38,940 nucleotides of DNA from Cyanophora paradoxa CCMP329 (taxonomy: Eukaryota > Plantae > Glaucophyta), in contig QPMI01000394.1 of the NCBI GenBank assembly GCA_004431415.1, positions 1 through 38,940 of the forward strand, in the 5' to 3' direction. Made by a program: the position numbers and the translations under genes. Shown piece after piece: positions 2,789-34,473 of the stretch; the stretch's first letter is position 1, and each line of letters starts with the position of its first letter. Below the pieces are notes generated by a model. It had not been told where the DNA came from and searched no databases. It worked only from the letters and a program-made list of their open reading frames with translations.

Positions 2789-2819
<31 letters not shown>

Positions 2820-11392: not shown

Positions 11393-11792
11393 CTTCGAAT
11401 TCGGCAACCGTTGAACTGGCCCATGGCCCAGTGGGAGTCTCCCCCGAAGCGGCGAGGGCCGAGTACCTACTACCTAGGGGCCCCGGCCCCCGGGCCGGGC
11501 CGGGTCCGAAGTTCCTCCGGATCCGATCGAATTAATATTTGATTCCGAAGTTCGAACGTTTAACGAATTCGAACGAACAGCCGCGCTGAGCTCGAGCCTT
11601 TTTAATTTGCTGAGTCAGTGATATATCGTGCCACGATTCGTGCGCATGTGTGCGGGGGCCCCGGGCCATCGGGGCCCAATCGATTGGCCGTATTATAGTA
11701 CCGAGTACCGGGGCACAATCGATTTATATGCATGCTTATAAATAATTATCATGCCATGATCATCATGATTCATGATGATCTGATCATGCCAG

Positions 11793-11901
11793 TACCGTAT
11801 AACACAATATTAAGGTCTGCACTAGCTTTATTATGTCGTCCCCAGATTATAATTATGTCGCCGAAAACTTGACATGCCGACATAATTCGGGGACGACATA
11901 A
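11793..11901. repeat. Inverted-repeat element (possible second MITE remnant)
   Basis: ttatgtcgtcccc (11831) ... ggggacgacataa (~11889-11901) is a perfect inverted repeat with internal aattatgtcg/cgacataatt; the element begins with taccgta. Confidence 0.45.
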
Positions 11902-12418
11902 CACTGGGAGCCAGGAATTAAGTTTACCACATGGTAAACTTGCAACTTCACTCACTTAGGGCTGACTTTACCACACCTGTCTTTACCCCACCTAGGAAAG
12001 CCGCGCGGGGGAGCACTGCTGCCGTGCTAAATGTGCTTAGCTAGGCATAAGTGCATGGGATCCATTGAGCGCCGATGGCCCGGTAGCTTCTGTGGTCCGT
12101 CGTGGATGCGAGCACAACTCGTCAAGAGAGCGACGCATGCGGGCTGCCTTGACTGGTTCAAGTGTTCTAAAAGGTCGTTTAGAGACGATTTGCAGCTTTT
12201 AAGGGGAGGTTGTTGGGCGGCCCGACCTCGGCCAACTTCACCCAGGCCCGACCATTATGAGCTGGGGCGCAGCGCACAGCGCTTTGAATGCGGTAAGCAT
12301 TGATTTCAGCTACGTTACAACCGAAGTACGGCTGCCACATCGGTGCTCTTGAGACCGATGGCTGCCAATGGTTGCGTACCGAACGCTCAGACCGAGCGCC
12401 GCCGAGGTAGCCGGCGGT

Positions 12419-12712
12419 GCTAACGCCTCTAGCTAGCTAGATCGCGTGCTCTAGCTAGTTCTCCGACCGCCGGGTGCCGCCGTTGGAGCCTTGCTGGTGC
12501 GGTGGTCGGACGGGTACCCCCCTGCGAGTAGTTCCCCCCGGGCAAAGTCGCCGGGGCAAAGTCGCCGGGGCAAACTTGCCGGGGCGAAGTCGCGGTTTCC
12601 GGAGCGCAGGATCTGGAGCTGTGTTCTGCTAGCGTCCAAGTGCTGTCGGCGTGGCAAGCGGTCAAAGTGCTGTCGGCGTGGAAGCGTGGCACGTGGCGCT
12701 CGAGAAACGCCA
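12419..12712. promoter_or_regulatory. Dispersed intergenic cassette copy 1 (14-bp gggcaaagtcgccg array, aagtgctgtcggcg x2, CACGTG)
   Basis: Near-identical to 15817-16034, to 19116-19204 (truncated) and partly to 23951-24060. It lies just upstream of a putative gene start. The regulatory role is inferred. Confidence 0.55.
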
Positions 12713-12761
12713 GCTGGAGACTTTCCAAGACGCCGGGGCGAACTTTCCGGAGCGAAGTCGC

Positions 12762-13619
12762 ATGAGCGCTATTAAGCGCCCGCGTGCCGGAGATGCGTAT
12801 GATGCGAAGGACGCAAAGGATGAAGTACGCGCGGTCACACTTCATATCGCTACATCCAGCGTGCGTCTGCTCGCTCGCGCTTCGAATTCTTTGCTCGCTC
12901 GGCCACAAATTTAAACCACGCGCGCAGGAGATGCCCGTGGTCACTCTCGAAATCTCCAGCCCCGCCTGCATCGTCGTGCGGCCCGCCCGCCGGCGCCCTC
13001 TTGCTCGTTTTCTCAGACCAGCCGGCTTGCCATTGGCACAGGACCCGGAGCAGAGCACCTTCAAGCCCAAGCAGCGGCTGCCGGCAGAGGGGCTGGCCAT
13101 CATCGAGGCCACCCTGCGTGCCCACCAGCCCCGCACGGTCGCATTGCGGCTTGAGAAGTGCGCGCGGCTCCCGAGCGCCGCCTCGTGCACTAAGTGCAGC
13201 CCGCAGCGCCCGCCTCGAGGACATTCCGGCATCGCTGCAGGATATCCTCGTCGAGAAGGTTGCGCACATCCACCTCGTCGGCGAGACCACGCTGCACCCG
13301 TTCCCAGAGGAGAACGCAGAGTCGGCCCTCGTCTATGCTACTATGTCGGACCTTCGCAAGCGTGGGCTGCTCACGATGACCATGTCGCCCGAGGTGCGGC
13401 ACGGCCATGGCCAGCTAGCGCCCTCCCTTTCCTCGACCCCGCCCATCTGCAACCCAGGTACCCTGGCTCGTGGACCCCCTCAAGTTCGTTTGCGGCGAGT
13501 TGCCACCCTACAACAAGATTTTCCAACGGTTTAACACCTTCATGGAGCACATCTACGGCCCCTTCCTGTGAAATCAATCAGGGCAGGCACTCGTTATGCA
13601 CTACGGCGCCGACATGTAA
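12762..13619 (+). CDS. Hypothetical multi-exon protein
   Basis: ATG AGC GCT ATT AAG CGC CCG CGT (MSAIKRPR, NLS-like) followed by GT..AG-bounded coding-like segments; no recognisable domain. Confidence 0.4.
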
Positions 13620-14006
13620 TGCGCTACCTCAGTAGCTCTGAAACCCTGACTTCAATTAAATAGTGCACGCCTCCGCCTCGCCTATCGCCGGAGTCGACAT
13701 TAGCAGTTGACGACGCTCAAATGGCAGGCGCGCGCTTTAGGCGAGAAAGCGCCATCGCTGAGCTACATGAAGCTCTCCACGCGTACATTCATGGGTTGCC
13801 GCTGCCCACAAGGGAGCCGACAAGTCGACAACCGGCATCTTCGATGACAGGTGCATGCACATGCAGTTTTGCGGTCAAACCAGAATTGAGGAGAAACAGA
13901 TCAAAAACCAAACCAGAACCAAGCTCGCCAAGATGTTCGAACCAGGGTGAAAGTGTCCAAATGGATTCCTGGTGCGAGGGTATCCGGGATTAGCTATGTG
14001 TCACTT

Positions 14007-14238
14007 GCAGTGATGTGTTCGGCATCGATACCGGTATATTCGGATCCAGGGTATTGATTGAGTTTCCAGCTCAATCGCGAGCGTCTGCAGCTGGCATGGC
14101 TTATGTGAAGGCAGCACAGAAAACCCATCGTGACATTCTTGTGCATGGTACACTCAAGATCTAAATATCGCGCGCAGTGATGTGTTCGGCATCGATACCG
14201 GTATATTCGGATCCAGGGTATTGATTGAGTTTCCAGCT
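14007..14238 (+). repeat. 65-bp exact direct duplication (14007-14071 and 14174-14238)
   Basis: gcagtgatgtgttcggcatcgataccggtatattcggatccagggtattgattgagtttccagct occurs twice; each copy looks like AG|exon|GT. Confidence 0.85.
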
Positions 14239-15143
14239 AAATCGTGCGCACACATACATATGTTATTGAGTCCGTTCTGCTAATCCTTATAATCTCTGCG
14301 AAATGCACTTGCAGTTTGCGAAATGCGAGAGCGCAATCCCAAGTTCTTCGAGAGCCTTGAAACAAAGTAGTTTGAATTACACAGCTCTCTCGTCAAGAAC
14401 TGCTCCACGTGCACCAGCACAAGACGAGAAGCACATGTTGGTGTCGCATGCAGGTAAAAACCATTGCACGTTAATCAACACATGAATTAATTGAATGTAT
14501 ACGCAGGGTTTCTATTCGCTGTTCCCTCTTATGCAGTACGTACACTACCAGGAATCTCGATAAATATAGCCAGCGAACAGATCTAGAGCGAAGCTTACAG
14601 ACGGTATATCTTTCCAATAGACTATTACCATCCGGACTTAAGCATTTCCTTGCCTCCCCAAAACTCTATTGCTAGAATAGTTATAGCAATCAGAAGGTCA
14701 GGTACATATGCACGCAGACATGCAGCTTGTTAAAGATCCGGCCGCGGAGGTAAGGCTCCTAGGAAACGGTACAGGTAGAATTTGTAATGTAGAACTTAGG
14801 TAAGGCTTGGTAGCCCGAGTGTATACGTAGTGGTATCCTGTTCGTGTCGTAGATTTGTTGTGTAATATGATGTGTTAAATATATTTGAATCGTTGTGTAA
14901 AGTTTCGGATTTCCAAAATTCGTGCTGCACTACGGCGCCGGCTTCGACTTGGATCCGAGACGAATGCGACCAGCATGACTACTATATAGTTCACGTCTCC
15001 TGCTACTCAGAATTCGAATTCGAGAAAACAATACAGCAATCTCTGTGCAGAAGAATCTGTGTTTGGCTAGTGCGCATGGCGTCGGCGACCACGAATAAGA
15101 TGCAGCTGCGGACCCGTACTAGGTCCTAGGGGATTTGCACTGG

Positions 15144-15772
15144 CTAGGATCCGGAAACGGTCGCCAGGAAGGGCACGTGCTCGATTTTCGGGACCACCTC
15201 ATGCCTCGCGACGTAGAACAAATCATCCGGGAATGGCCCTGTACTCGACGCCTGTGCACATGCACGCGTGAATTCGGGAATGCCGCATCAGAAATCAAGG
15301 TAAGAAGCAAAGATCGCTTGCACCGGCGGCTCGAAGCAACGGCTTTCTGGATCGTACCAATAGAGCGCAAGCCCGCTAACATTGCCTACAGAGTTGCATT
15401 CGCAGTCCAGGTCGAAGTAAGCCTGGATCAGAAGGTCTGTCTGCCACGACATAGAAACATCTATCCTGACGCGCACTGGCCCTGCCTGTTGAGATCAGGG
15501 CACACAATCAGGGGCAACGATGCCGGGTTGCAATTGCACGTGTGCACCCGTCTTTTCAGTGACGCGTAGCGGGGAAGGCCGGCAGTCACCGAGAACCCGC
15601 ACCTCGACTGAGCTGCCCCGTGCACGAGCCGCGGTCGTGGCGCGTATAGAGCAATCAGCACTTCCGACTCTGCGATCTGCTCTGCTGTCGGCGGCATGCG
15701 CAGCTGTCCCGCTGTCACTCCTGACTTCCTTGCAGCTTTGGTAGCGAGCTGTTTTCGAGGTACTTTCTGCAT
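15144..15772 (-). CDS. H3-tail-mimic family protein, copy 1 (2 introns, one 1-nt indel)
   Basis: MQKVPRKQLATKAARKS (PRKQLATKAARKS is H3 16-28 exactly) is followed by PTAEQIAESE..VEVRVLGDCRPSPLRVT|GPVRVRID..LALYWYDP|ASSTGPFPDDLFYVARHEVVPKIEHVPFLATVSGS*. Confidence 0.8.
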
Positions 15773-15816
15773 TCTGGAACGCAGTCCGACAGCGAGCGAA
15801 CCGAGCGCCGCCGTCT

Positions 15817-16034
15817 TTGGAGCCTTGCTGGTGCGTGGTCGAACGAGTACCCCCGGCAGGAAGTTCCCCCGGGCAAAGCCGCCGGGCAAAGTCGCCGGGG
15901 CAAAGTCGCCGGAGCACTGTCGCGGTTTCCGGAGCGCCGGATCTGGAGCTGTGTTCTGCTAGCGTCCGAAGTGCTGTCGGCGGGGCAAGCGGTCAAAGTG
16001 CTGTCGGCGTGGAAGCGTGGCACGTGGCGCTCGA
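15817..16034. promoter_or_regulatory. Dispersed intergenic cassette copy 2, between divergent genes
   Basis: Homologous to 12484-12712; flanked by an ATG on the minus strand (15772) and an ATG on the plus strand (16134). Confidence 0.6.
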
Positions 16035-16133
16035 AAAGGTGCGCCGGATGCCTTCTTTCCGCATGCGCACCCATATATAGCGGCCTTGCGCGTGCGTCCG
16101 TGCGGCCTCCCTTGACAGTAGCGTCTCTCAGGG

Positions 16134-17131
16134 ATGAATGCACACGAGGAGACGAAACGCAAACTCGAAGAGAGCGAACAGGAGGTTGATTATGAGCTTG
16201 AGACGGAGGAAAGCGGCCCGGCGCGTGCGGAGAAACGTGCGCGAGATGAGGCGTCGCGGCGGCAGCTCGAGAAGCAAGCGTCAGCGGAAGCGGTGGCGGA
16301 GATTCATCGACGTCTGCGGAAGGCTGAGGAGCGGGCTGCAGCCGCCAAGAACGACGCAAGAGCTCTCAGCGACGACGAAGAAGTGGAAGAGCGGCCAAAG
16401 GAGGTTCCGTGTCGTACCTGTGTCGAGAACCCATCATCCCACTGTGCATATGCGCCATCATCCTGGGTATCGAAAGTGCCAGCACTTTGCACGAACTCCC
16501 TATGGACGTTCGGCCCTTCGCTAATTTGGCGCTTCGGATTGCCAAGCTCCACCGGCAGTCGCGGGCCTTCGACATCCTCCCCAGTCGGGCGAGGACAGCG
16601 ATCGCGAAGGAGAAGGTGAGGACACGAATTACTGCACCACCCTGATTGAATCTCTGCCGTCGGAGGGGAGGGGAATCTGGACCTGAACAGTGCGCATGGC
16701 CTTCTGTTTTAATTTACCCCGAGAAATTTTGCTTTCACAGAGCCAGTGATCATGAGCACAGGGGACTCTGGGAGGACATCTGTATGGTCACCCTCGAAGG
16801 TTTTCAAGTGGTGAAGAGCCCGCTGCGCATGTTTCAGCTCTGTGATGGTGGTTTCCGCGTTTGCGATCCTCTTCATCCGTCCGTGGATGAAGCGCTTCGC
16901 GACCTCTGCGGACTCTGCCTCAGCAACAGCGACCTCGAGTTCTTTAGGGACATTTCCAAGCGCCTGAAAGAAAAGCAGGCCACTGAACAAGCACGCAAGC
17001 ACATTTTGCATGACTTTTGACATCTTGCATGTACCTTTGAACAAGCACGCAATAGTATACTGCAGCTGAAGCTTGAGCACCTCAACCTCGGAACCAACCT
17101 CAACGGGGCCGGGGCAGGGGGGGGCACGTAA
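16134..17131 (+). CDS. Hypothetical multi-exon protein with N-terminal acidic coiled coil
   Basis: MNAHEETKRKLEESEQE...EKRARDEASRRQLEKQ; the following ORF segments at 16409 and 16646 are joinable through GT-AG introns. The 3' end is uncertain. Confidence 0.5.
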
Positions 17132-17406
17132 TTGTATTCGGAAACTTTAACTCTTCGATGGTTTTCGCATACATAGTTCTCTGGAGAATTCCAACTCTTC
17201 GATTTATGCGATCGCGGCCGCGGCAGCCATGCCCCAAGGCGCTCTGAATTCGAATTCGAGAAGACAATACTGCTACCAATCTCTGTGCACAAGAATCTCT
17301 GTTCGGCTAGCTTGCATGGCGCCGGCGGCCACCGCTAGCGTGCATGGCGCCGGCGTGCAATTCGAATAAGATGCAGCTGTCGGACCGCTAGGGGCCTTGA
17401 CACTGG

Positions 17407-18046
17407 CTAGGATCCTGTAACGGTTGCCAGGAAGGGTGCATGCTCGACTTCCGGGATGATTTCCTTCATTGCCACGTAGAACAGGTCATCCGGGATGGCC
17501 CTGGACTCGACGCCTGTGCACATGCACGCGTGAATTCGGGAATGCCGCATCAGAAATCGAGGTAAGAAGCAAAGATCGCTTGCACCAGCGGCTCGAAGCA
17601 CCGGCTAGCTGGGTCGTACCGATAGAGCGACAGCTCGCGGCGATCAATGGGCACCGGTGTGCAGCGCAATTCCCGGTACGCTTGGGCCAGAAGATCTTTC
17701 TCCCACGTCTTTGAAACATACAGCTTGATTCGCACAGGCCCTGCGCGGTTGCAATTAGGGCGCACTGGCAGAGCAACGATGAACCGGACACATGTGCACC
17801 TGTCATTTCAGTGACGCGTGGCCGAGAAGGGCGGCAGTCCCCGAGAACGCGCACCTCGACAGAGCTGCCCTCGAGCTCGTTCTCGAGCCGCGGTAAACGT
17901 CGCGGCGTGTATAGAGCAATCAGCGCTTCCGACTCTGCGACCTGCTCCGCTGTTGGCTCTGGATCGGGTACGAATCGTGAAGTAGGCGGTGCTTTCTTTG
18001 GTCTGGGTCTAGTGCCGAGAACTTTGCGGGGAGCTTTGCTTGACAT
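17407..18046 (-). CDS. H3-tail-mimic family protein, copy 2
   Basis: MSSKAPRKVLGT..PTAEQVAESEALIALY..VEVRVLGDCRP..|GPVRIKLY..LSLYRYDP|..DDLFYVAMKEIIPEVEHAPFLATVTGS*; same two introns as the other copies, with one 1-nt indel in the last exon. Confidence 0.78.
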
Positions 18047-18145
18047 TGCTTCTAGAGATGCGCGGCCGCAACGTTAACCCAATGCCTTAATGTTTACCCC
18101 CGGTGGGATTACCCCTGGGCATACTGACCGTGACTTCGTTCGCGA

Positions 18146-18218
18146 TTCAGCTCTGTGATGGTGGTTTCCGCGTTCGCGATCCTCTTCATCCGTCCGTGGA
18201 TGAAGCGCTTCGCGACCT
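18146..18218 (+). repeat. 73-bp fragment duplicated from the 3' exon of the 16134 gene (16833-16905)
   Basis: ttcagctctgtgatggtggtttccgcgtt.gcgatcctcttcatccgtccgtggatgaagcgcttcgcgacct is present at both positions. Confidence 0.85.
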
Positions 18219-18371
18219 TCGCGAAATCAATGCCGATACATTAAATCGCGACGAAAATTCGAATTGACAAAACGAAGTACAGCATTCCCTGTTCAAATAT
18301 CGTGCATGGCGTCGGCGGCCATGAATTCCAATAAGATGCAGCTGTCGGGCCGCTAGGGGCCTTGGCACTGG

Positions 18372-19003
18372 CTAGGATCCGGAAACGGTCGCCAGGAAGG
18401 GCGCGTGCTCGACATCCGGTATTACCGAATTCCTCGCCACGTAGACCAGGTCATCCGCGAATGGCCCCAGCGGACTCGACGCCTGTGCACATGTTCGCGT
18501 GAATTCGCGAATACCGGATCAGAAATCGAGGTAAGAAGCAAAGATCGCTTGCACCAGCGGCTCGAAGCACCGGCTAGCTGGGTCATACCGATACAGATCC
18601 AAAGTGCGGAAATCGATTACGTACGCATGACAGTTCAGGTCCATGTACGCACGGGCCCGAAGAACTCTCTGCCACGACATTCGAAAGTTTGAAATATCTA
18701 TCGTGACTCGCACAGGCCCTGCGCTGTTGCGATTAGGGCTGTTGCGAGGCGAAGATGCAACCGGGTTGGACCTGTCATTGAAGTGACGCGTAGCGGGGAA
18801 GGCCGGCAGTCACCGAGAACGCGAACCTCGATAGAGCTGCCCTCGTTCTCGAGCCGCGGTCGCGGCGTGAATAGAGCAATCAGCGCTTCCGACTCTGCGA
18901 TCTGCTCTGCTGTCGGCTGTCGGGACTCTGTCGCTGCTGACTTCCGTGAAGCTTTGGAAGCGAGCTGCTTGCTGCTTGCTGCTGCTTCGTCGCCGCGCTG
19001 CAT
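18372..19003 (-). CDS. H3-tail-mimic family protein, copy 3
   Basis: MQRGDEAAASSKQLASKASRKSA (about H3 18-29) followed by PTAEQIAESE..IEVRVLGDCRPSPLRVTSMT|..LDLYRYDP|..EHAPFLATVSGS*; the start codon is uncertain. Confidence 0.78.
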
Positions 19004-19115
19004 GTTCGAAATCCGCAGGAATGCGCAGGCGCACCGTGATCTACTGCGCGCAGGCATGCGCAGGCATGAAATCATGAGCGCCAGACTCGATCTACTCAAT
19101 CTGCTGGGTGCCGCT

Positions 19116-19204
19116 TTTGGAGCCTTGCTGGTGCAGTGGTCGGACGGGTACCCCCCGGCAAAGTAGTTCCCCCGGGCAAAGTCGCCGGGGCAAAGTCGCC
19201 GGGG
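19116..19204. promoter_or_regulatory. Dispersed intergenic cassette copy 3 (truncated after the 14-bp array)
   Basis: ttggagccttgctggtgc..gtacccccc..gggcaaagtcgccg x2, homologous to copies 1 and 2. Confidence 0.55.
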
Positions 19205-19518
19205 ACACTTGGAGCGAAGACGCGAGGAAAGCTCCAGTACGCAAATTTAGAGGTATGCAAACCCGCCCGAACCGTGGAATCAACCATTTGAACGCACTGC
19301 CGCATACGCAGGTCAAAACCTCGTCCGGAGCGCCCTGCAGCGGAGCACCTCGGGTTTAAAGCTCCGGTTCTCACAAGTAGAGGTAGGCAAACCTGCAGAT
19401 CCGTGGAATCAACCATTTGAACGCAGCGCGGCACACGCAGGTCGAAACCTCGGCCGAAACCTCTTGCAACTCCGAGCTCAAGCGGGTACTTGGGGAGAAG
19501 CGAGAAGCTCCCGCAGTA

Positions 19519-22007
19519 ATGCACACGCAAAGGCTGTTCACTCGAGCCCACGCACTTGCAGATGTGCGCCCGTGCCTGTGCTGTGTGAATGCACGTGGAC
19601 TTGCAGCTGAGTGTGCAACAGGTTGAGAACACGTTCAGAGCCCTCCTTTTGGATTCGAAGAACACTCCGCTCTTCATTCGTCCGAAGTGGCTTTTCGGTT
19701 CGCCGAAGGAGCAGGGAATATCGTTCCTTGGAATCGCGTCACCCAATTTCCGGATATGCATTGACAGTACCTTCCTCGCATCGGACAACCACAGAGCAAC
19801 TTTGGTGCCTCTGTTTGATCCAAGCATCGTCTACTGCGGGGTGTGGAGTAACAGCACGGAGCACGTCGAAAGGATTCGTAAAACTCTTGATATCCAGTGG
19901 CCGTCACTTCGGGCGATCGAAATCGACGACCTAGCCACCGCAGCGAAGCTGGACGGAACCTTGCAGAAAGACAGAAGACAAAAAGGTCTCAAATCCGGAA
20001 TCCAGGATCTTTCTACGGAATTTTTGCGTAAGGCGTTCGAGAAACCTGAGGATTTCAGATTCTTCGGGACTGGCTGGGACAGCGCCGAAGTGGACGAGAC
20101 GAGGCTGGCCTTCGCTTTTCGGGAATTGGAAACAGGCATCGGGATTATCAAAGTCATTTTAAAAAGGGTGGGGTTGAAGCTGACTTCTGCAAAGTTTTCG
20201 CTATCACTATCTATCGCTCTCGCAAACTTCCGCTATCGTTTAGTATCCGGAGACGAGCAGGAGGTTTGTCCTCGACGTCTGTGATAAAGAGGTGAGCTTG
20301 CTTTACTTCTGCTTTTTCAACCCGGCTGTTCTGCTGTTAATTATAATCGCAGGATGCACGTGTTGCTCTGGAGCTGAGCAAGTCTGAATGCGTCGACGGT
20401 GGAAAAGATGCATCCGCTCCGACACTGACACCTTCGATGCAAAAAGAAAAGGATGCTTCGAACAAACCTTTCCCTCCCATTTCATTCGTCCCAGCGCAAG
20501 GTGCCTCAAATCTCCAGTCGGAATGGTCTTCAACCTATGGAGGCTGTCACAAACACACTGGTGACACGATGAAAGACAGTCTATCTATCCCTCGGATAAG
20601 TTGAATTCCGGCTCGCAGGTACCGGTTCTCAGAATGCCGAACTTCGGGATCCGGAGGAGATTCGATGCTTGCAGCAGCAGGTGAAATCACTTCAGGATGA
20701 TAACGCCTTACTTCGACAAGCGAAAGAGCGCGTCGACGGTAAATGCCTTTTTTGCGTTCAGCTATAACTGCTTTCAGTTAATTAGTATCCGCGCGTAATC
20801 CCCGCTGCAGCCCCCGACTGCAGCGGCTGCAAGGAAAACGCTTTCCTGGTCGCCCAGCTGCAGCGGCTGCAAGGTCGAATCGCTCAGGGGCGCCTTCGTT
20901 CATTCTTCTTTTGAAACGTCTGCAGGCCTCCAGAATGAGAATGCTTCCCTGCTCGCCCAGCTGCAACGGCTGCAAGGTCGAATCGCTCAGGGGCGCCTTC
21001 GTTCATTCTTCTTTTGAAACGTCTGCAGGCGTCCAGCATGAAAATGCTTCCCTGCTCGCCCAGCTGCAACGGCTGCAAGGTCAAATCGCTCAGGGGCGCC
21101 TTCGTTCATTCTTCTTTTGAAACGTCTGCAGGCGTCCAGAATGAGAATGCTTCCCTGCTCGCCCAGCTGCAACGGCTGCAAGGTCAAATCGCTCAGGGGC
21201 GCCTTCTTTCATTCTTCGTTCGAAACGTCTGCAGGCATCCAGAATGAGAATGCTTCCCTGCTCGCCCAACTGCAGCGGCTGCAAGGTCGAATCGCTCAGG
21301 GGCGCCTTCTTCCAGTCTCCTCTTGAAACGTCTGCAGGCGTCCAGAATGAGAATGCTTCCCTGGTCGCCCAACTGCAGTGGCTGAAAGGTCAAATTGCTC
21401 GGGGGCGCCTTCTTTCATTCTTCGTTTGAAACGTCTGCAGGCATCCAGAATGAGAATGCTTCCCTGGTCGCCCAGCTGCAGCGGACCAATGGTGTTTTTT
21501 TAGACTGCTTTTCGATTTAGGTCTCGATTTGACCGTTTCCCGTGCGTGTAGCTGTGAATGCAGCTCCCCAAGCGCAACTGCAGCGGCTGACCGGTTTCCA
21601 CTTCGCCGTTTTCTCGGAATTGGGATTTCTGAGTGACTGATAATGACTGCAGCTATGAATGCGGGTCTCCAATCTCAGAAGAAAGCTCTTCGTGGTACGC
21701 TATCTCACTCCTTCGCGGTACATTCAATTTCCGGCCTTGAGTATGGGTATCTTAGATGAAGTCACGACGCTTCGTGGTACGGCGGTTTTCCTCCCCGATG
21801 ATTTTATGAACGTCGCGGTACATTTATGTTTACACCTCGTTCGCGATTCTTTGTAAATGTCAGCTGAAATTGCGACACTGCGAGGTATGGCGGTTCCCCT
21901 CGGATGCATTTTTATTTACTCCGATGCTGATATTGTGATCAGCAAAAATCGACGACCTGGAGGATGCTGAATTCCAGCGCCTGTTCGAAGGCGTGCTCAA
22001 TATTTAG
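19519..22007 (+). CDS. Degenerate DEDDy 3'-5' exonuclease-like domain (WRN/EXD/MUT-7 type) plus C-terminal coiled coil
   Basis: The large exon (19589 ORF) follows the WRN-exo pattern: PLFIRPKW..ISFLGIAS..LFDPSIVYCGV..IDDLATAA..GIQDLSTEFLRKAFEK..GWDSAEVDETRLAFAFRE. Downstream small exons give heptad repeats and end KIDDLEDAEFQRLFEGVLNI* (22005-22007). The start is uncertain. Confidence 0.62.
20836..21491 (+). repeat. 103-bp tandem repeat (51-nt exon + 52-nt intron), about 6.5 units
   Basis: Exon gcgtccagaatgagaatgcttccctgctcgcccagctgcaacggctgcaag (GVQNENASLLAQLQRLQ) alternates with intron gtcaaat...tctgcag; exons start at 20926, 21029, 21132, 21235, 21338 and 21441. Confidence 0.92.
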
Positions 22008-22228
22008 ACGTGTGATCTTCGTTTAAATCACAATTGAATTTCAGTATTGCACTGAACCTGCTGTTCAAATACGATTTAATCGGGAAGCTTCCACACAGTG
22101 CATACTCAGGCCACGGTCATAGAGGAAGGAGGGGGGGGGAAGAGAAGGGGGGGGGAGTGCCGAACTTACCGCGGCCGGCAAAAAAAGCCGGCTTGGCGTG
22201 CAGTGCTGCCACAACTCGAAGCTGCTGG

Positions 22229-22861
22229 ATGGCGAAAGTGAAAGAGAGAGCGCGTATGTCTACAGGCGGAAAAGCTCCTCGAAAGAACCTCGCACAGCGG
22301 CCGCGGCCGCCGACAGCGGAGCAGGTCGCGGAGTCGGAAGCACTGAATGCTCTTTACGCGCCACGACCGCGGCCCGAGAACGAAGGCAGCTTTGTTGACG
22401 TACACATTCTCGGCGACTGCCGGCCTGCCCCGCTACGCGTCACTGCAATGACAGGTGCAAATGTACACCGATTCACCGTTGCTCTGCCAGTGTGCCGTGA
22501 ACTCAACAGCGCATGCGCAGGGCCTGTGCGAGTCACGATCCGTGCTTCGGACTCGAATGCGTGGAAGAGCGAGCTACTGGACCTGGCGTTCGAGGAGCTG
22601 CACTGCAGTACGCATGTGCACCTCGAGGAGCTGGTGCTGTATCGATCTCGGTACGACCAAGCAGGCTGGTACTTCGAGCTTCCGGTGCAAGCGATTGTTG
22701 CGTCTTACGGTGATTTCTGATGCGGATCTCGCGAATTCACGGGTGCGCGTGCACAGGCGTCGAGTCCGGGGCCATCCCCGGGAGATCTGTATTACGTCGC
22801 GAGGAGGGATATCATCCCGGAAGTCGAGCATGTACCTTTCCTGGCGATCAATCAGGAATAG
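22229..22861 (+). CDS. H3-tail-mimic family protein, copy 4 (K9M-like tail)
   Basis: MAKVKERARMSTGGKAPRKNLA aligns to H3 1-21; introns 22455-22520 and 22685-22756 (GT-AG); ends GDLYYVARRDIIPEVEHVPFLAINQE*. Confidence 0.85.
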
Positions 22862-22960
22862 TTGCAAGTGCCGGCATCCCTTCCCTAGTCCGGATTTCGT
22901 AGCCAAAAATACGCGGATGTATTATACGTATACGCGGCGGCACGGATACAACAGGAGCGC

Positions 22961-23736
22961 CTAATTGCCAGCGCTGTAGTGCAACACGAGCGCCTCAAAT
23001 TCTCTCCTACGGCGCTCTATGTAGTCTCCATCTAAATCTAGATCTAGAGGGTTGCCTCGCATTTCGCGCTCTGCGAAGTCCAGCAACCAGATCCCGCACT
23101 AGCGAGCGTGGTCAGCCGTTGCCACTGGCCACGGGCGGGAGTGAAAACAGCACTAACCTGATGGCCGTCATGCTGCACTGCTCGCTGTACCGATTGGATG
23201 ACGTCAATTTCATGTTTCAAGAGAATTCTTGCGAGCTTGCGCGGAGCCTTCGCGCCAATGCTGTCGTAGTATCTGCAGACCTTGCCGTCGATAACCAAGA
23301 GTGTCCAGTGTCGTCGGTTGTTGACGGGGACGAGAGCGCGTGTGCTGGTGCCATTCAAGTGCTCGAGTAACGCTTCTATGTAGGATTCAGCGTCGTGGAG
23401 GGCGAGCGGATGTGCGATGAACCAATTCTGTGTGACTGCCTCCTTGGCCGCCGCCGCGCGGATGCAAACGAGCGCGCTCTCGATTGCGCTCGATGACAGC
23501 CACAAATCCCGGCTGCAGCTGAAGCTGAGCTGATGCCGAACTAGATCTGCGCTAACGATCTTCGGCCGCGCCTTGACTGTGCCCAGCTCCTCCAACTCAG
23601 AAGAGGGCTCTGGGTCACCACACTGCAGCTGTCTTTGCCGCCGTATGCGCTTCTTTAAAACTACAGGAGAGGGCTTCGGATCTGAATCATCACATTGCAT
23701 ATCCCGCCGGCGCTTCGCTGCCTTCGCGGAGGCCAT
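22961..23736 (-). CDS. Ulp1/SENP-family (peptidase C48) cysteine protease
   Basis: WLSSSAI..VPVNNRRHWTLLVI..YYDSIG..QHDGHQ|CGIWLL (intron 23099-23157) gives the His, Asp, Gln and Cys catalytic set; basic NLS-like N-terminus (KRRR, KKRIRR). Confidence 0.88.
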
Positions 23737-23950
23737 CTGCGAGGATCCGGAGAACGGACGACCTAGGCCTGCAGGGGAACAAGCCCGCATGAGTTCCAGC
23801 GGCGAACTGTAAAGGCAGAGCACGAAGCGGGCGTGCACATTCACGAATGCCGAAGTCGACGGCTATATCTATCAACGTTCAACGTTCAGCGCCGTTGATC
23901 ATGACAGGCCACGCGGCGCCCGAGTCCACGTCAGCGAGGCTGCCGGCGAT

Positions 23951-24060
23951 GGCTAAGCCTCCGGCTAGCTGTTTTACGCGCTCTAGCTCGATCTCCGACC
24001 ACCGGTCACCGCCTGAAAGCTTCGAGACTTGCTGGCGGCATTGAGCGCACGTGTACCCCC
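23951..24060. promoter_or_regulatory. Diverged copy of the left part of the intergenic cassette, between the Ulp1 gene and H3-mimic copy 5
   Basis: gctaagcctccggctagct..gctctagctcgatctccgaccaccgg..gtaccccc resembles 12419-12520. Confidence 0.45.
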
Positions 24061-24228
24061 ACTAGTCCCATCCCGGGCCGTCCGGGCCGTCCCGGACGAG
24101 ACCAAGATCCAGCAATCTAGCGTCTGCACAAGGCAGCGCGGCGCGAGCTCGAGGAGCGCGACTCCCCAGTTTCCAGTTTTCCGACAGGATCTAGCGACTC
24201 TCGGAAGTTTCGAGGCGCGCTCGCTCTA

Positions 24229-24864
24229 ATGGCGAAGACAAAACAAAAGGCGCGAAAGTACAACGGATCGATTCCTCAGAAGAAAATGCCTACCAAAGCT
24301 TCAAGAAAGCGGAAGTCAGAGCCGGAGCCCGACCCGTCAAAGAAGCAGGTGCCCGAGAACGAGGGCAGCTCTAAAACTGTCGAGGTGCGCGTTCTCGGCG
24401 ACTGCCGGCCTGCCCCGCTACGCGTCACTTCAATGACAGGTGCATGCCCGGTTGCATCGTTGCTTCTGCTAGTGTGCCGTGATCTCAACAGCGCATGCGC
24501 AGGGCCTGTGCGAGTCACGATCCGTGCTTCGGACTCGAATGCGTGGAAGAGCGAGCTACTGGACCTGGCGTTCTTGGAGCTGCACTGCAGTACGCATGTG
24601 GATGACCGCGGCACTCTGGCGGTGCATTGGTACGACCCAGCAAGCCGAACCTTCCAGTCGTTGGTGCAAGCGATCTTTGCGTCGTATACGTACGGTGATT
24701 TCTGCTGCGGATCTCGCGAATTCACGGGTGCGCGTGCACAGGCGTCAAGGGCGCAGGGGCCATCCCCGGATGATCTGTTTTACATTACGAGGAATACAGT
24801 TGATCCGGCCGTCGAGCATGTACCTTTCCTGGCGGATCCGGACGCAGTGATAGAGCTTGACTAG
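24229..24864 (+). CDS. H3-tail-mimic family protein, copy 5
   Basis: MAKTKQKARKYNGSIPQKKMPTKASRK (H3-like K4, K9 and K27 positions) followed by the same conserved domain; the two inferred introns happen to be open in frame. Confidence 0.82.
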   Translation: MAKTKQKARKYNGSIPQKKMPTKASRKRKSEPEPDPSKKQVPENEGSSKTVEVRVLGDCRPAPLRVTSMTGACPVASLLLLVCRDLNSACAGPVRVTIRASDSNAWKSELLDLAFLELHCSTHVDDRGTLAVHWYDPASRTFQSLVQAIFASYTYGDFCCGSREFTGARAQASRAQGPSPDDLFYITRNTVDPAVEHVPFLADPDAVIELD

Positions 24865-24969
24865 CCCATGGCCGTGGCTGGAATTGCGTTTGCATGTTCG
24901 TGCTCTCATGTATGAATTGTTCACTTCGAGTGACTGTCTAGCTGAAATGATTGACAATTGCATGATCGA

Positions 24970-27213
24970 TTACACGATAATAATGCATTTCGAGAGGGAC
25001 TGCATCTCTAAGATACGATTTTTTATCGTCTTGATCTCATTGTCGACATTATCGCTCTGTGCTTTGATCAGAGCGTTCTTCTGGCGCACATGATCGAGAA
25101 GTGACGCAAGCGCTGTTTCAAGAACGTCGAAGGACGTCGCTTGCAATTGCTGGTTGAGTGTTCCTAGGGCACGCGTTGCGTCGTAGTTGACATCGGTTTG
25201 AGCACCAGAAATCATGAGTGCCATCTGCGCAGCAGGAAGCTCATTTATGGCACCACAAATCTGGAAACTGCAAAAAAGAACGTCTGCGAAAGAGAGGTGC
25301 AGACGAACCTTCTTATTAAGCTCATGTAGCTGTGCGAGGAGGTTAACAATACACCTTATTCTCTCTCCAAGTGCCCGGTCGAAGACAACTTCGTTGCGCA
25401 AGTAGATATCTACAAGATGCAGCTTTTCTAAGGATGGCGCCTTCTCGAACGCCCCGACCACACACTGAGCAACATATTCTGGGATTGCGCGCATTGCATC
25501 TGTTCGCTGTTCATAGCCAGTCACTCCAACCAGGCGGAGGGTTTCCAGAGATGAGCACTGCGAAGCGATCTTCGTGATGGAGGTGACCAGCCAGTTGCGC
25601 TCGACACGTAAGACTTGTGCTCCATGAGCGTCAGAGGGTGCAAGCGGAAGGATCAGCTCGCGAAGGCTGCTGAATCGTAATGTCTTTGCGAGTTCCGCGA
25701 GACGATTCGGTGATAATTTACGGAGCTGTGCCACGGTTGCATGTGGAACTGTGCATGCCACCAGGTCCAGCGTGATAAGAGATTGACACTTCCGCGCTGC
25801 TGATAAGATTTGCTCGTAATCACGCCCGTCCTCCAGCGTGAAGCGCAACGTTTGCGTGAAATTGCTTAGATACCGTTCCATCTTATTTATATTCGTGCTG
25901 TCGCTCTTAATGATGCAATTGATGAACGAAATATGTTTGAGACAGCACGAGTCGGGAGAGCAGAAGAACTGGACGACTGGATGCGAAGCTGGGCGGATGC
26001 GAGTTGCTGTGAATTCGACATGGAGCTCCTCCGTGCATTCCCCCGCCGTATGATGCAATACCAGAGATGCCGGCCGCGGTGGGGCCATTGACGAGTCATT
26101 TTGGATGTCCCGAGGCTCGTCAGATATCTGCAATCCAAATCAGGCTGCTCGAATATAAATAGTGGCAGGTCGTGCACATTGAAAATCATGGACGCGGGCG
26201 CTGGACGAAAGAGTCCTGGGGTTTTCAGCTCTAGGCCTTCGCTTGTTAGACATCCTTTGATGATGACTTTCTTGGCACTGAAAGCCCAGTAGGAGAAGGA
26301 ACCCGCAGCTTCTTGAAACATGATGGTTTCTTGGTCGACACATAGCTCTTCGACCGTCCCAAATGACGTGTCATCAGGCCCGCAGTCACGAAAGCTGCAA
26401 ATTATGAAAAAACTGTTTGTCAGCTTCTGGTTCTGAATGGATTACGTAAACGAATACGTAGCGAATTTGGACTTACTGAACGGGCCCCCCGAATACCTGC
26501 GTTGGTAACAGAGTTCGATACGGCTCGATGCTGGCTATTTCCTCCGTTTCACGGTGTGCGCGAAGGCTTGCGCTTGCCTTGTCGTCCAGAATAAGACGGC
26601 GAGGCGCCGTCTTCAAGATAAGGTGGACCCAGTCAAAATGAATGGCCTCAAGGTCGTCGGAACCACACCCTGTGCAGATTCCTAGGCACCGCTTGGGCTT
26701 CTCAAAGAAACGCTGTATGCTGTCCAGGAGGATTGCAAGTTTCTTAAACGTCTTTGGCTGCTTCCATAATTCCGAGGCAAAGCTGGAGGAAGCGAATTTG
26801 ATGCTACCGCCATGCTCTAGGATCCACTTCGCGCGAATCCACACCCTTTCAAGCAGGAGAGCCGGAATTGTGTCAAGAAAGATGGTCGCGGTGCGGACGC
26901 GCTTCAAGCCATTGCCCTGTTCCACGAGAATCCTGTAGAAGCGCCGGCTGCTACTCCACAGAGCTCGCACGGACTCGAGGCGTTCATTAGGAACCATGCT
27001 GGCAATTATGGCGATGGCATCGTCTGGAAGATCATTTATCGTTATGGTTGCCTTTCTTGTCGATTCGAGCCTGTGCGGCGAATGTTAGAGAGGGGTTCTT
27101 TCGCTTGCTTTGCCTCCGAATGAATATGCGTACCGCTCATCTACTTCTGGTACCGGTGGCGACGTCTTTAGTAGATCCATGTGTAGGTTCGAATCCCCGC
27201 CCGCAGGCTCCAT
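24970..27213 (-). CDS. F-box-like / LRR (RNI-like) protein
   Basis: Spliced N-terminus ..TINDLPDDAIAIIASMVP..WSSSRRFYRIL (F-box pattern); repeats SLITLDL, SLRELIL, SLETLRL, SLEKLHL. Confidence 0.7.
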
Positions 27214-27586
27214 ACTGCAAGCCGATTCCCTGCATTATGTGAGCCGATTTGGTCCGCGAATGCGCGTCAACGTGCATGCGCACTGCAGCTGCGCATTTGT
27301 CGGCCCAGCACGTTTTGGTGTCTTCCCAGAGTCAGCGGCCAGATCCAGACTCTCGTCCCTGCGCGCGCAGAGGACAACAATCAAGGCACGATAAACGCAC
27401 CCACGCCAATATTAATACGACGCACGAGCGTTTCCTTCGTCTACGCTGCATCGCAAGTTTGAAATTTCTCAGAGGGGTACGGTAAGGATACGGTTAGGGG
27501 GTTCTAAATGGGGAAGGGGTACGAGCTACGGGATTTGCGCGGGAAGCCGTCGTTTTACTCGGAAACGCGTATTACAAGCTTTAAGT

Positions 27587-28527
27587 ATGTCGCAGCTTGA
27601 AGACCCCATGGCCGGCCTGGTATCGCAGTCGAATCAAAGCTCTGAAGATAAGGTGCGTCGCACTCAGCGGCCAGCGGATAAGCTGCTGGCTTAAGCTAAC
27701 CGGCCACGCATGCGCATGCGCAGTGCACGACGGTGAAGCGGGCGCGGGAGGAGATCAATGGCGAGCGTGCGAGCAAAAGGCAAACTTCGGGCACAGGGAA
27801 CTCCAGCGAAAAAAGGCCCTTAAGCTTGCTAAACAGTGAGCACCTGGTGCGAACACTACTCCACTCTAGATCTACGACTCGGCGAAAAGTATTCTTCATA
27901 ACACGGTTTGAACGCTCGCACTTTTAGAAACAGTTTGAACACGCGCTTGATTTCACGTACGGGCTTCCCTTCACATTTCACAAGTTGATGGTGCGAATCA
28001 AATAGTAGTGATGAGTTTTCCTTGACCGTCGGACGTCTGTGCGAACGAGTGCATGTACAGCACGACAACCAGCGGAACATTATGCGGCAGCTTCGAAGTG
28101 ATGTGATGGCGCTATCAGCTAATGTGAGCCGTGGCCCGCACTCACTGATGGTCAACTCTCTGAAATGCTCGAATTCCAGGTCAGTTCTGTAATCGAAAAG
28201 GAGATCGCTGATATAAACCAACCGGTCGCCTCCGAAGAGTGTGTGCTCATGTTAAACTCTCAGCAACTGGAAAAGCTATTTCAAAGCCTCAAGAATGCTG
28301 TTATTTGTGAGATCGAATGCTGTCAAAAGCGAATGGTAAAGACAGATTTGGTGATTATATAGTCATGCCGACGTCTGTCAGTTCACGTGCGTGCACGACA
28401 GATCAAAAGGGAATTCGACGAATTCAACCATCTTGAGAGGGAAATCGAAACCGTGAATGTGTCAATCTTAAGTCTGCAACGTCAGGCACTATCGTCGCTT
28501 AAGACCGAGGGCGGAAGTCAGGAATGA
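27587..28527 (+). CDS. Hypothetical multi-exon coiled-coil protein
   Basis: MSQLEDPMAG..|..VKRAREEINGERASKRQ..; last exon IKREFDEFNHLEREIETVNVSILSLQRQ..QE*; GT-AG introns. Confidence 0.45.
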
Positions 28528-30933
28528 AGTAAGAAGAGATCCCATGTGCGAACATGCGACTTTGTCTTTGTATTATTTGTTGCGAGCAAGCAAAAGCTAG
28601 CTGAGTATGTAACTTGGCATATTGTAGCGCTAGCCAAGCGAGCTCGATAATCTTACATACTGCACACTGCACCAATTCCCTCGCTGCATTTTATTGATCG
28701 TGGAGAAAAGCAGTTGAATTAGAGGATAAAAAATCGCGTAGACCCTTGTTGGTATCTATGAATTGCCCCTGGGCCAGGAATGACGTGCCGCCTCGTATTT
28801 CGACTCTCCAAAAGCAATAAAGCCGAGAAAGCGTATTTTGATGTTCGCAGAGCATGTTGACGGCTTGCGTAAGCTCCTCCAGACCAACTCTGGTACGCAC
28901 AGCGATGTTAAGTTCAACATGAGCCAGTCTTGGACCCGACTCCAACAGCGCCTTCTTTCATTGATCAGAAACACGGAATCGCATTTGAATGAGTGAAACA
29001 GCGAACCCGCAAGATTTCTGCCGGATGTGGAAAGAAGCCTTCGATGCTGAGCAGGCGAACTTTCGTTCGCATTGACCGAAGGAGGGCCATAAAACTGTCT
29101 TGGTGAAGTGTTCGGCTTTCTACATTCTGATGGTAGCGAGTGCCTAGATCTCGTACAAGCAGATCACATTGTTCGAGCGCCGGGAGTTGCTCCAAGTTCG
29201 CTCGGATTTCTTCGAAAGATACACCGATTGCTCTGTGCACGTCTTCTGCTGGATAACTCCGCGTCTGCTGAATTGTGGGTGGAACGATGGCCCGGCACGA
29301 ATGCACAGATACGCACTTCGATATGAATTCTAACATTTTTAAGCATCGGGAGCGGTCGCAAAATTTTGAAGTGGGTCTCGCAGCCGATCTGACGTTGCCG
29401 AAGTAAGCAACTCGAACACCGAACAACAATGCCGAATCGCACCTGAATCTCGAGACTTTCGAGGTTAGCCATTGTGCTGATACGCTCGACCGTCGACCCA
29501 GTGCTTTTATACGCAACTATCAACGCTCGCACACTTTCCGGATTGAGCGTCGAGAGCGCTGTGTCCTCCCGAACTGTGCATGATAAGCGTTGCGGGGAGA
29601 GTTTGACTATCGCGTCCTGCAGTAGATATCGATGTCAGTAAACACTATCTGCGCTGATGGGATATTACGTGCATCTGATGCATACGTACCGCCTGATCAG
29701 CTGACAGGAAAGGCGGTGTTAACTCAATGGTCCTCTGGCCCGCATGCTCGCATCGTACCATGGACAACTCGCGGAGCCCTTTCAAATTGACCTCAGCGGC
29801 TGCACGGAGAAAGATGGCGGCAAAGCGTTCGTATGCGGTCACTGATAACCGGCCTTCTGGATAGTTCCGCAGCGCCTTCGTGAATGCGCGTGCGACATCT
29901 AGAGTGCTGACAAATTGTTCGCTGACTTCGTCATACAACACGTGTTCACATTTCTCCCAGTAGTCCCAGCCCTCGAAAATGACATGCACAGAATTCCGCA
30001 GAAGCTTCGCCTTTGCCACGTCCTCGATCACATCTGAGCTCGAGGCCAGTTAGAACACCGGTTTTTTGAAGTGGAATTGATGCAATTGTCGCGATGTCTG
30101 TGCAAATTTCGCGCACCAAATATTGACCTCAGAATACTGAAGCATAGCTTGAATGCAAATTTCCTCTCTGTTCGGTGCGAGTAGAGCATGTCGGGGAACT
30201 GCTCGAACCGGTCATGCCAAAATGAGCTGACGATGACGTTCTCGCAGCCCGCGAGTTTCTTTTCTCTGAACAGAGCTCTGACTGCGCTGAGGAGCTCGTT
30301 GGCTGCGGGCCCCATTTCCACAAGATCGGAACCGTTCAGCCGGAGCACAGGCCAGTTCTTATCTTTGAGAAGCTGCGTGAAGCGTTTGTTGATGCTGAAG
30401 AACTGGTGTTTGCACGCTTCGGAGAGATCATCGTAGACGAGCTCTAAGATGCGAACGAGGAGGCTATCCGGCATCTGGTCGAAGGGGCGGGTTGCTGCTC
30501 TGCATGCGCATGCTCCTGCTCATGATCACGGTTTGCGCTGATGCATCGCTCAGCATCAGCGCCAGCTTGCCCGAAAGGGGGTGGTTCGCAAGCGCTGGCA
30601 CCTCTCTGTCGCTGGCTCCGCGCCCGCAGCTTGGAGCAAGTTTGAAGCGGCTGCCGTGTCTTGTGCAACCGGCTGCTCTGCCCACTGCAGCAGCCGCTGA
30701 TCATGAAGCTGAAGGACCTCCGCTTCTGCAGCGGACGCCAGCTGCAAGTCTGCTCCTGGGGTGTCTGCAGCTGCGCAACCAAGCTCGCAACCAAGCAACA
30801 CAAAGATGTGAGAGTACGCACCTTGTAACGCTGCAGCCCTATTAGTCGCATGTTCAGGATCGCTCTCCTCCTCGTTCACACGCGCGCGTTTCGAGTCGTG
30901 CGCGTCTCGCGCGGCGTTCGCCGCGCAATCCAT
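28499..30933 (-). CDS. F-box-like / LRR protein
   Basis: MDCAANAARDAHDSKRAR..; FDQMPDSLLVRILELV..FFSINKRFTQLL (F-box); LRR-like NLKGLRELSM, NLESLEI, LPALEQCDL. The 3' end is approximate. Confidence 0.65.
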
Positions 30934-30949
30934 CGCCGGTTGCAATGCT

Positions 30950-30973
30950 GCGCTACCGCGCTACCGCGCTACC
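30950..30973. repeat. (gcgctacc)3 in the ~120-bp spacer between divergent F-box genes
   Basis: Three exact 8-bp units plus a degenerate fourth. Confidence 0.8.
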
Positions 30974-31056
30974 GCACGAGCTACCGCTGAGCGGCTAGTT
31001 GCAACGGAAGGAGGGTACACGGCTCTCAGCCACGCCCAGCTCGCAGCACGCGAGCG

Positions 31057-32967
31057 ATGGCGGAACGCTCAGCGAAGCGAGCACGTGCAGAAGCGCCAGT
31101 GGAATCTGGCGCGGTGCTTCGTTCCATCTCCGACCTGCCCGACGGCGTCCTTGGCAGTGTTTTCAAGTCAGTCTCGCTGGTGCAAGCCTGGCCGCTTCGA
31201 GAAGTGTGTAGGTGCGTCCCAGGCTCGCTCGCCGAGTCGACTTGGACCCTCCGGATCCAACCCGCGCTGCCACGCAGGCGTTGGAGGAGCGTGATCGAGG
31301 GCACAGCGTGGGACTGTATCGAGCTGCGGTCGAATGAGGATTTCGTGTTTCAGCATCTCGTGTCGCTGCTCCGGAGCGAGAAGATCAAGCTCGCTTGCGG
31401 CGCGCATACGCGGGTCACCGTTGGAATGCATGCGCAGAGCGAGAGCAATTTCGGCTTTGTCGCATTGGCCTCTGCCGTGCTGGCGGCCTGCAACAAGGAC
31501 GGCAAGGTGGCAGAGGCAGACGTGTGCTTCTTGGCAGAACACATCAACAGCCTCGACAGCGTCGTGCATGCTTTCATCCTGGCAACCCTCGCAGCTCTCC
31601 GGCCGCAGCGTGCGGCGCGCAGCGCTCTGGAGAAGCTTGCCATTCGCCTAGAGACGCTGGAGTACGAGTTCTTTCGGATACTCCCTAAGGGCGACCTTGT
31701 CAACCTACGTATTGACCAGAGGCAAAAGGCAACCGCTGAGGACTTGCAAGCGTCCTTGGAGTCGTTGAGCAGTATTCGGTCCCTCAAGCTGATGCCGAAC
31801 GCGTTTCCCCTGGACAGCACAGCAGCAGCAGCGATCGCCAGCAGCCTCCCCAACCTTCAGTCTATCCACTTCTCGGCAAACGACTGCAGCGTGCTTGCAG
31901 TCCTCGCGACCTTATCAGCTCTGCGTGACGTTGTCATCAACTGGTTCACCCCTGAAAGATTCCCCACGGACCCTTCAGAGATCGGCGACGCCTTCTCGAC
32001 TCTAGCTGCTGGCCCTGCTGGAAAGTCGCTGCGATCAATTGTCCTCGATCCTGATCCCGTGTGAGTGCTCTGGCAACTGCGTGCGGTTTGCCAAAAAGCC
32101 CAGGTCGGCCGATTCCTCGACGCAGTAAATTTTTCTTTCCGCTCAACAACACTGGTCTACACTCCATCGCGAAATTTCCTTTCCTCGAGGAAATATGTAT
32201 CGACGTGCGCGTCCATATGAGCTAAGTTATGCTCTCGTCACTAACTCCCTAACTGCGTGACGCAGCTGAGCAGTGACAAACTGGAGTCTGCCGACCTGGC
32301 GGCATTCCAGTCGACAAGCTTGCGAGATGTGAGTGTGAGACTTCACGTTGTGAAGCGTGCAATGGTCGAGCGCTTGGGAGCGCTCGAGTCCGCCATTGCG
32401 AGGTTCTCGAAGCTGTCTTCACTGACATTAAATCTGGCAATCCCCGAAGGCGGTGCAGACGGTGCACCGGCTCTAGATCTGTGCAGTCATTCCCGCACTG
32501 ATGATGATCTCTCGGATCTGCACAGACATGCACCCCGCGGATGATGAGGCTATTTCACGCTTCCTCCGCACGTGCAAGTCGTCTCTGCGCGGATTGTTCC
32601 TCTATCTCAGGCGGCCTCTCAGCGCGTCGGAGGCAGAGTCTATATCTCTCTGCACAGAGCTGAAGTCCCTGGATGTGTCCTGCAATATTCGCTCCGTCGC
32701 AGAGATCGGGCCGCTGCAGGTGCGGCGCCGGCGTATGCATTATGAAGCAAAGAAGTTTATTTATTTAGCAAAGCAAAGAAGTTCATTTATTTATACTTCC
32801 CTCTACAGGGACTGGACGTGTGCCTCGACAAAGTACCGTCCGCGAAATTTCACATTGCGATTTCGCGAGAGCCACGAGAGCCGGGCTACGAGAGCGTCGT
32901 CAAGCAGCTGCTGCAGGATTTTTTGCCGCGCGCCACGATATCGACTAGTATTCTTACGTATAGCTAG
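31057..32967 (+). CDS. F-box / LRR protein
   Basis: SISDLPDGVLGSVFKSVSLVQAWPLREVCR|RWRSVI is a classic F-box; LRR-like LSSIRSLKL, LPNLQSIHF, FSKLSSLTL, CTELKSLDVS. Confidence 0.82.
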
Positions 32968-34464: not shown

Positions 34465-34473
34465 TACACTGTT

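Follow-up and report, generated by a model that had tools for sequence, protein, structure and literature searches.

The window (the whole 38,940-nt stretch of Cyanophora paradoxa DNA analyzed here) contains five paralogous genes, 67–80% identical to each other at the DNA level. Copies 3–5 are intact; either decay or assembly error may explain the one-base gap present in both copy 1 and copy 2. The initial annotation dealt with an H3-like peptide at the start of copy 4 and missed both the spliced gene that begins at 22229 and the four paralogues. The exons of copy 4 were aligned singly to a C. paradoxa homologue, tig00021290_g19967 (P0003); a further homologue is tig00000157_g9696 (P0001). The features are as follows.

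10900..38940: low-GC (∼55%) island of intron-containing, lineage-specific genes, which holds the family
15144..15772, reverse strand: copy 1, with H3 residues 14–28 including K27; exon 1 has a one-base gap near 15620
17407..18046, reverse strand: copy 2, with no more of H3 than residues 14–18; exon 3 has a one-base gap near 17494
18372..19003, reverse strand: copy 3, intact, three exons; H3 residues 18–29 with K27 kept
22229..22294, forward strand: H3(1–21)-like N-terminal tail of copy 4 with Met for K9 (translation, PDB matches, shuffles)
22229..22454, forward strand: copy 4 exon 1 (226 nt, phase 1), which encodes the H3-like tail, a Pro/acidic linker and the first domain strand
22455..22520, forward strand: copy 4 intron 1, 66 nt, GT-AG; when translated, it matches nothing in P0001 or P0003
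22521..22684, forward strand: copy 4 exon 2, which continues the beta-grasp-like domain with a strand, the helix and more strands (P0003 alignment)
22685..22756, forward strand: copy 4 intron 2, 72 nt, phase 0; a TGA at 22718–22720 lies within a CTGAT branch-like motif
22757..22861, forward strand: copy 4 exon 3 up to the TAG stop; last domain strand, no C-terminal GG
23044..23844, reverse strand: ORF lying between copies 4 and 5; one stretch, containing His/Asp, weakly resembles Ulp1/C48 peptidases (Pfam E 0.045, below cut-off)
24229..24864, forward strand: copy 5, intact, three exons; introns at 24440–24502 and 24664–24741

The three exons of copy 4 sum to 495 nt and hence 164 residues. The peptide had been taken for a free, non-nucleosomal entity: that no histone fold follows it agrees with the second part of this description, but it is the N-terminus of a 164-amino acid protein with a beta-grasp-like domain rather than a free peptide. 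In the alignment to P0003, exon 1 reaches residue 42 and exon 2 takes over from residue 45, which leaves no space for intron 1; the spacing ahead of the last strand in P0001 and P0003 likewise rules out intron 2 as coding sequence. Translations of the introns do not align to the homologues, and the exons fit back to back.

The same two GT-AG introns are common to all five copies, with donors, branch-like motifs, acceptors and phases conserved. Intron 1 measures 53, 59, 63, 66 and 66 nt, two of these lengths not being multiples of three, and the differences explain most of the apparent frameshifts among copies. Decay as the cause of the frame changes in copies 1–3 was accordingly rejected: the two introns account for nearly all of them. 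Intron 2 measures 72–78 nt. It is more alike between copies (0.79–0.99) than are the exons (0.66–0.89) and its length is always a multiple of three; gene conversion, a regulatory role or retention of the intron now and then are candidate reasons for this conservation.

The naive open reading frame of copy 4 ends at the TGA at 22718, which sits in intron 2. This TGA is shared by copies 1–4, copy 5 having TGC (Cys) at the aligned position; the surrounding segment is 72 or 78 nt long in every copy and, as noted, better conserved than the exons. Were it a selenocysteine or read-through codon, the 72-nt segment would be coding. We regard this as very improbable: every TGA-bearing copy shows intron signals (GT donor, CTGAT branch-like motif, CAG acceptor), neither C. 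paradoxa homologue leaves room for the segment, and Rfam returned no SECIS, only two sub-threshold chance matches. A selenoprotein was rejected for copy 4 on these same grounds.

The 66 bases at 22229–22294 (forward strand), with which copy 4 starts, translate as the initial annotation had read them. The ATG at 22256–22258 places Met in the K9 position (numbering after removal of the initiator Met), and the tail matches H3(0–21) in register at 16 of 22 residues. The exact correspondence to H3 that had been claimed holds for A7–R8 and S10–K18, which are the same residues as in H3, but not elsewhere: R2K, T3V, Q5E, T6R and Q19N differ and, together with K9M, bring the changes to six among 20 tail positions. 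In 200 block-shuffled windows the best match to H3(0–21) anywhere was 7–10 of 22 residues, and none exceeded 10. The best 60 PDB sequence matches of copy 4 were without exception H3 or H3-tail entries (best E 0.0011), confined to H3 residues 1–33 and covering the first 24–33 residues. No Pfam match to a histone-fold domain follows the tail, and the PDB matches stop by residue 33. Translation, PDB matches and shuffles thus bear out the original identification of an H3-tail mimic with Met at K9: the peptide is a genuine derivative of the H3 tail and, there being no histone fold, is not part of an H3 variant.

A word-based protein search with residues 1–40 of copy 4, which sees only proteins 0.55–1.75 times the length of the query, gave no match, and exact look-ups of copy 4 and of the window-encoded protein P0005 (see below) returned no contig and hence no second independent DNA for the ATG codon. 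This lack of an independent copy, and the one-base indel problems in the window (the kinase gene described below, near 9120, and copies 1 and 2), are what speak for the ATG being an assembly error for AAG. However, the visible faults are indels, not substitutions, and five other real-looking substitutions surround the codon; the probable source, the C. paradoxa assembly (PMC6704402), had also been corrected with Illumina data, which left 27,675 residual variants in 99.94 Mb and counts against a misread ATG. An error here is scarcely credible.

The copies differ in the portion of the H3 tail that they carry. The tail of copy 5 is a degenerate H3(1–27) that retains K4, K9 (AAG) and K27; it begins M-A-K in H3 register, as does that of copy 4, and the K27 segment is retained in copies 1, 3 and 5. 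Several differences among the copies in the shared KAPRK stretch are synonymous. The simplest history would be a single fusion of a whole H3 tail, with differential loss thereafter. A search of the paralogues for ARMST, as proposed in the initial annotation, finds it in none of the other four: copy 5 keeps K9 and copies 1–3 have lost the segment. A further GGKAPRK match lies between stop codons at 14746–14770 (forward strand), ∼370 bases past the end of copy 1, and is either a degenerate H3-tail fragment or chance.

Pooled dN/dS values, from pairs that are not independent, are 0.61 for the core of exon 1, 0.90 for exon 2 and 0.35 for exon 3, which at the level of sequence points to weak and uneven constraint, apparently purifying in exon 3 and near neutral in exon 2. 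Apart from the single gap in copy 2, every indel in exons 2 and 3 preserves the frame. Copies 4 and 5, 73% identical overall, share a 136-nt tract (22483–22618 and 24465–24600) that is 97% identical and looks like a recent gene conversion. No family member was found among annotated proteins, a set that includes the EukProt proteins of C. paradoxa, and a word-based search with copy 5, under the same length limits (0.55–1.75 times the query), gave no match. That the annotated proteome lacks the family hints weakly at low expression.

All five copies share a domain of ∼110 amino acids. A profile search of 1.84 billion protein representatives, for which exon pieces were placed on the stop-free genomic frame of copy 5 as a scaffold, returned two credible relatives, P0001 (E 2.3e-8) and P0003 (E 5.6e-5, both among 1.8 billion proteins), so that the true relatives found are C. 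paradoxa proteins only. In both, the domain is an N-terminal module and there is no H3 tail. Two further HMMER matches (P0002 and P0004) were rejected as repeat-driven noise. The domain was absent from the viral and metagenome contigs searched and had no PDB match by profile. AlphaFold2, run on the natural homologue segment P0001:30–142, predicts strand-strand-helix-strand-strand-strand (E-E-H-E-E-E) with a mean pLDDT of 68; the top Foldseek PDB fold matches to this model are ubiquitin-like, RA and DIX domains, with probability up to 0.99 and E of at least 0.016. The model suggests that this Cyanophora-specific domain is probably a beta-grasp (ubiquitin-like) fold. None of the five copies ends in the C-terminal di-glycine of ubiquitin-like modifiers; the LxLFLAK motif is absent, and the proteins end directly after the domain with no C-terminal effector domain.

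To the left of the island, positions 1–10,800 hold a host gene at 76% GC. Judged by eye, this is an intron-rich hybrid kinase on the forward strand (1–10800) with Ser/Thr kinase, AAA, GAF, histidine kinase and receiver domains; some of its introns appear to be GC-AG, and in runs of GC the frame is broken by single bases (near 9120, for instance), probably through assembly error. F-box/LRR-like genes occur at 24970–27084 (reverse), 30031–30519 (reverse), 31057–32960 (forward) and 34477–36982 (reverse). The ORF at 31057 is 100% identical to a EukProt entry (P0005) and 45–63% identical to three C. paradoxa proteins; the others were called by eye only. The Ulp1-like ORF beside genes for a ubiquitin-like fold may be a chance pairing. 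The ORFs scanned, and a self-BLAST of the window, beyond whose right end the island extends, revealed no transposase, terminal repeats or viral hallmarks.

Repeats are also present. At 20840–21484 a 103-nt unit occurs 6.3 times; it resembles an exon together with its intron, encodes what would be a 17-residue coiled-coil-like repeat and perhaps belongs to the gene starting at 19589. A repeated element with 14-nt tandem units, 88–89% identical, is found at 12470–12706, 15801–16037 and 19103–19224, two of the three copies being directly upstream of copies 1 and 3; it is possibly a small mobile or promoter element. Finally, a divergent H3-like gene leaves the window at 38593–38830 (forward strand). 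It has a short first exon at 38593, an acceptor near 38697, a tail in register with S at position 4 and R at position 9, and GGVRKPFR followed by a probable intron. This may be a full H3 variant, kin to the donor of the family's tails.

K9M is found in one of the five copies, and the codon at position 9 is ATG in copy 4 and AAG in copy 5. Because copy 5 has AAG, K9M is most simply a single derived one-base change, in keeping with the AAG-to-ATG-type change originally envisaged. At the rate of change seen in the tail, a rough estimate gives any one lysine a probability of ∼0.03–0.06 of having turned to Met, and puts the chance that drift yields it across the seven K4, K9 and K27 sites of the copies at 0.21–0.35 (also rough). 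K9M in copy 4 may thus be drift in a fast-changing tail.

The frequency of K9M elsewhere was assessed by scanning metagenomes for the motif with any position-9 codon lacking a middle A, with 120 loci listed. Among the matches listed, K9M accounts for 19 of the 120 K9-substituted loci, and in A-R-x-S loci position 9 is R in 56 cases and M in 19. By clusters, again among the matches listed, M at K9 arises in 10 lineages and T in one (p 0.012). The share of M among non-R replacements is 10/29 at K9 and 3/8 at K18 (clusters among the matches listed; Fisher p = 1.0, the K18 control being small): since K18 turns to M at a similar share, no K9-specific preference is demonstrated. Nonetheless, the excess of M over T at K9, and the perfect A7–R8 and S10–K18 around the Met, leave room for selection on K9M.

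Most metagenome K9M loci are full H3 variants, with L061, L082 and L084 as tail-only fusions (among the matches listed). Many of these eukaryotic H3 variants carry R, M, I, L, V or F for K9, and in the matches listed K4 is kept in 45 of 46 clusters. One locus (L099) is a tail-only fusion with K9W on an F-box/LRR-like protein and another (L117) resembles an animal H3 pseudogene; none of the contigs retrieved was judged to be human. A K9M H3 variant has also been published for Alexandrium monilatum (PMC4751559). Natural K9M is therefore not unique to this gene; it is already known and is common in divergent H3-like sequences. ARMSTGGKAP was not found in the viral contigs or prokaryotic genomes searched: of 38 H3-like tails in viral contigs 35 keep K9 and none has M. 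These 38 IMG/VR contigs (L121–L158) encode H3-like proteins with near-canonical tails, and many are labelled as giant-virus MAGs.

We tentatively prefer, with confidence a little short of even, to see the five genes as a family of histone-tail mimics in which K9M is incidental. The proposal builds on the observed gene structure, the five copies, the H3 origin of the tails and the kinship of the domain, and on a beta-grasp fold that is predicted. An H3 N-terminal tail (approximately residues 1–28) would have been joined to a Cyanophora-specific beta-grasp module; the fusion gene would then have been duplicated locally into five copies, each of which kept a different piece of the tail. The products would be small, nuclear, non-nucleosomal histone mimics (location and binding are predictions) whose exposed basic tail acts as a decoy that engages readers and writers of the H3 tail, with the ubiquitin-like domain as a protein-binding module. 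M9 would leave the site unmethylatable and could make copy 4 a weak pseudo-substrate of SUV39/G9a-type enzymes, but it is probably incidental and not the reason for the family's existence. Points against mimicry are the gaps in two copies, the near-neutral exon 2, the failure to find any family member among annotated proteins and Foldseek E values no better than those given above (at least 0.016). A serious, if somewhat less probable, alternative is that all five genes are chimeric duplicates, silent or decaying, within a methylated island; K9M would then be a product of neutral decay, and the captured H3 fragment would have no role in chromatin and serve at most as a basic tail for nuclear import or nucleic-acid binding. 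Tails lost or degraded differently in each copy, frame gaps in two of five and the dN/dS of 0.90 in exon 2 are as expected under such decay, as is the absence of the family from an annotated proteome in which the neighbouring F-box/LRR fragment is present. In addition, 21% of C. paradoxa genes are CG-methylated and silenced (PMC12344493). Decay sits poorly, however, with splice signals and exon phases retained at 67–80% DNA identity, with exon 2 and 3 indels that are in frame save for one gap in copy 2, with purifying constraint on exon 3 and with three intact copies.

A further alternative casts copy 4 as a dedicated inhibitor, selected for its K9M pseudo-substrate and thus the K9 counterpart of EZHIP, which would occupy the SET pocket of the host H3K9 methyltransferase together with SAM and loosen silencing, perhaps that of its own island. 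The biochemical premise of the initial annotation is sound: a canonical H3(1–21) K9M peptide is an in vitro inhibitor of Clr4 and, with SAM, binds both Clr4 and G9a (PMC5030085). Residues 3–12 are ordered in the G9a-K9M structure (PMC5030085); of these, copy 4 retains 4, 7, 8 and 10–12, and 3, 5 and 6 are altered, so that some binding in vitro is plausible. The gene is intact, A7–R8 and S10–K18 are unaltered around M9, and K9M recurs in ∼10 unrelated metagenome clusters against one K9T (among the matches listed). The silencing of 21% of genes (PMC12344493) supplies both a motive for anti-silencing, which could pay in C. paradoxa, and a reason why the island may itself be silent. Against this, K9M is confined to one copy, with K9 kept in copy 5; three residues of the G9a-ordered segment have changed; M shows no K9-specific excess over the K18 control (among the matches listed); and no transposase or viral hallmark was found in the window. 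Moreover, trapping in vivo required recruitment of Clr4 to K9M nucleosomes, and K9M nucleosomes of fission yeast failed to trap Clr4 when they lay outside heterochromatin (PMC5030085), from which we infer that an effect of copy 4 in vivo would need targeting or high abundance. A dedicated inhibitor is therefore unlikely, and marginally less likely still is the fuller proposition that copy 4 is an expressed H3K9 methyltransferase inhibitor within a family of decoys that share out the K4, K9 and K27 sites among themselves and shield a fast-evolving island from silencing.

Inhibition of histone methyltransferases by K-to-M substitutions is known from cancer mutations, from engineered histones and from EZHIP (at K27). 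The literature searched contained no report of a natural non-histone K9M inhibitor, and there appears to be no earlier description of a family in which one small domain is fused to differing parts of the H3 tail. Copy 4 and the tail-only metagenome K9M fusions provide cheap candidates at the peptide level. If the inhibitor reading were true, the recurrent K9M tails of other eukaryotes would be convergent versions of the same trick; even without inhibition the histone-mimic family shows the birth and diversification of such mimics. If the copies are silent they are a mere curiosity of gene shuffling.

The natural H3K27M mimic EZHIP (CXorf67) carries a motif that is highly conserved in placental mammals and inhibits PRC2 (PMC12713659). 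Like copy 4 it is a non-histone protein bearing a K-to-M version of an H3 methylation site. In copy 4, however, the site is K9, the motif is present in one of five paralogues and is not conserved in the family, and a near-literal H3 N-terminus sits on a predicted beta-grasp domain; with an unconserved motif and a candidate activity, copy 4 is not to be filed with EZHIP. A second comparison is with Crinkler (CR) proteins, which carry a Ubl header (PMC5289972), and with AACRNL, a CRN-like anti-silencing parasite that ADP-ribosylates EZH2 (PMC12957317). The likeness would lie in a lineage-specific, predicted beta-grasp module with varied partners, and a selfish gene that blunts a histone methyltransferase is a precedent. 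In contrast to CR proteins the Cyanophora family has no LxLFLAK, no toxin domain and no recognised sequence link, and AACRNL does not work by mimicry. The domain is N-terminal in P0001 and P0003 and follows the tail here, and its fold matches to Ubl and RA domains have E of at least 0.016. P0001 and P0003 share the domain with the family but have long, unrelated C-termini (a beta-helix in P0001) and no H3 tail.

The H3 of Alexandrium monilatum (PMC4751559) and metagenome loci such as L001, L031, L045, L106 and L114 have the same ARMSTGGKAPR as copy 4. The Alexandrium and metagenome K9M H3s keep the histone fold and can enter nucleosomes, whereas copy 4 has no such fold. The tail-only metagenome fusions, of which no published description was found, join an H3 tail to non-histone sequence as in copy 4 (K9M in L061, L082 and L084, K9W in L099), but their partner domains are unrelated to the one found here.
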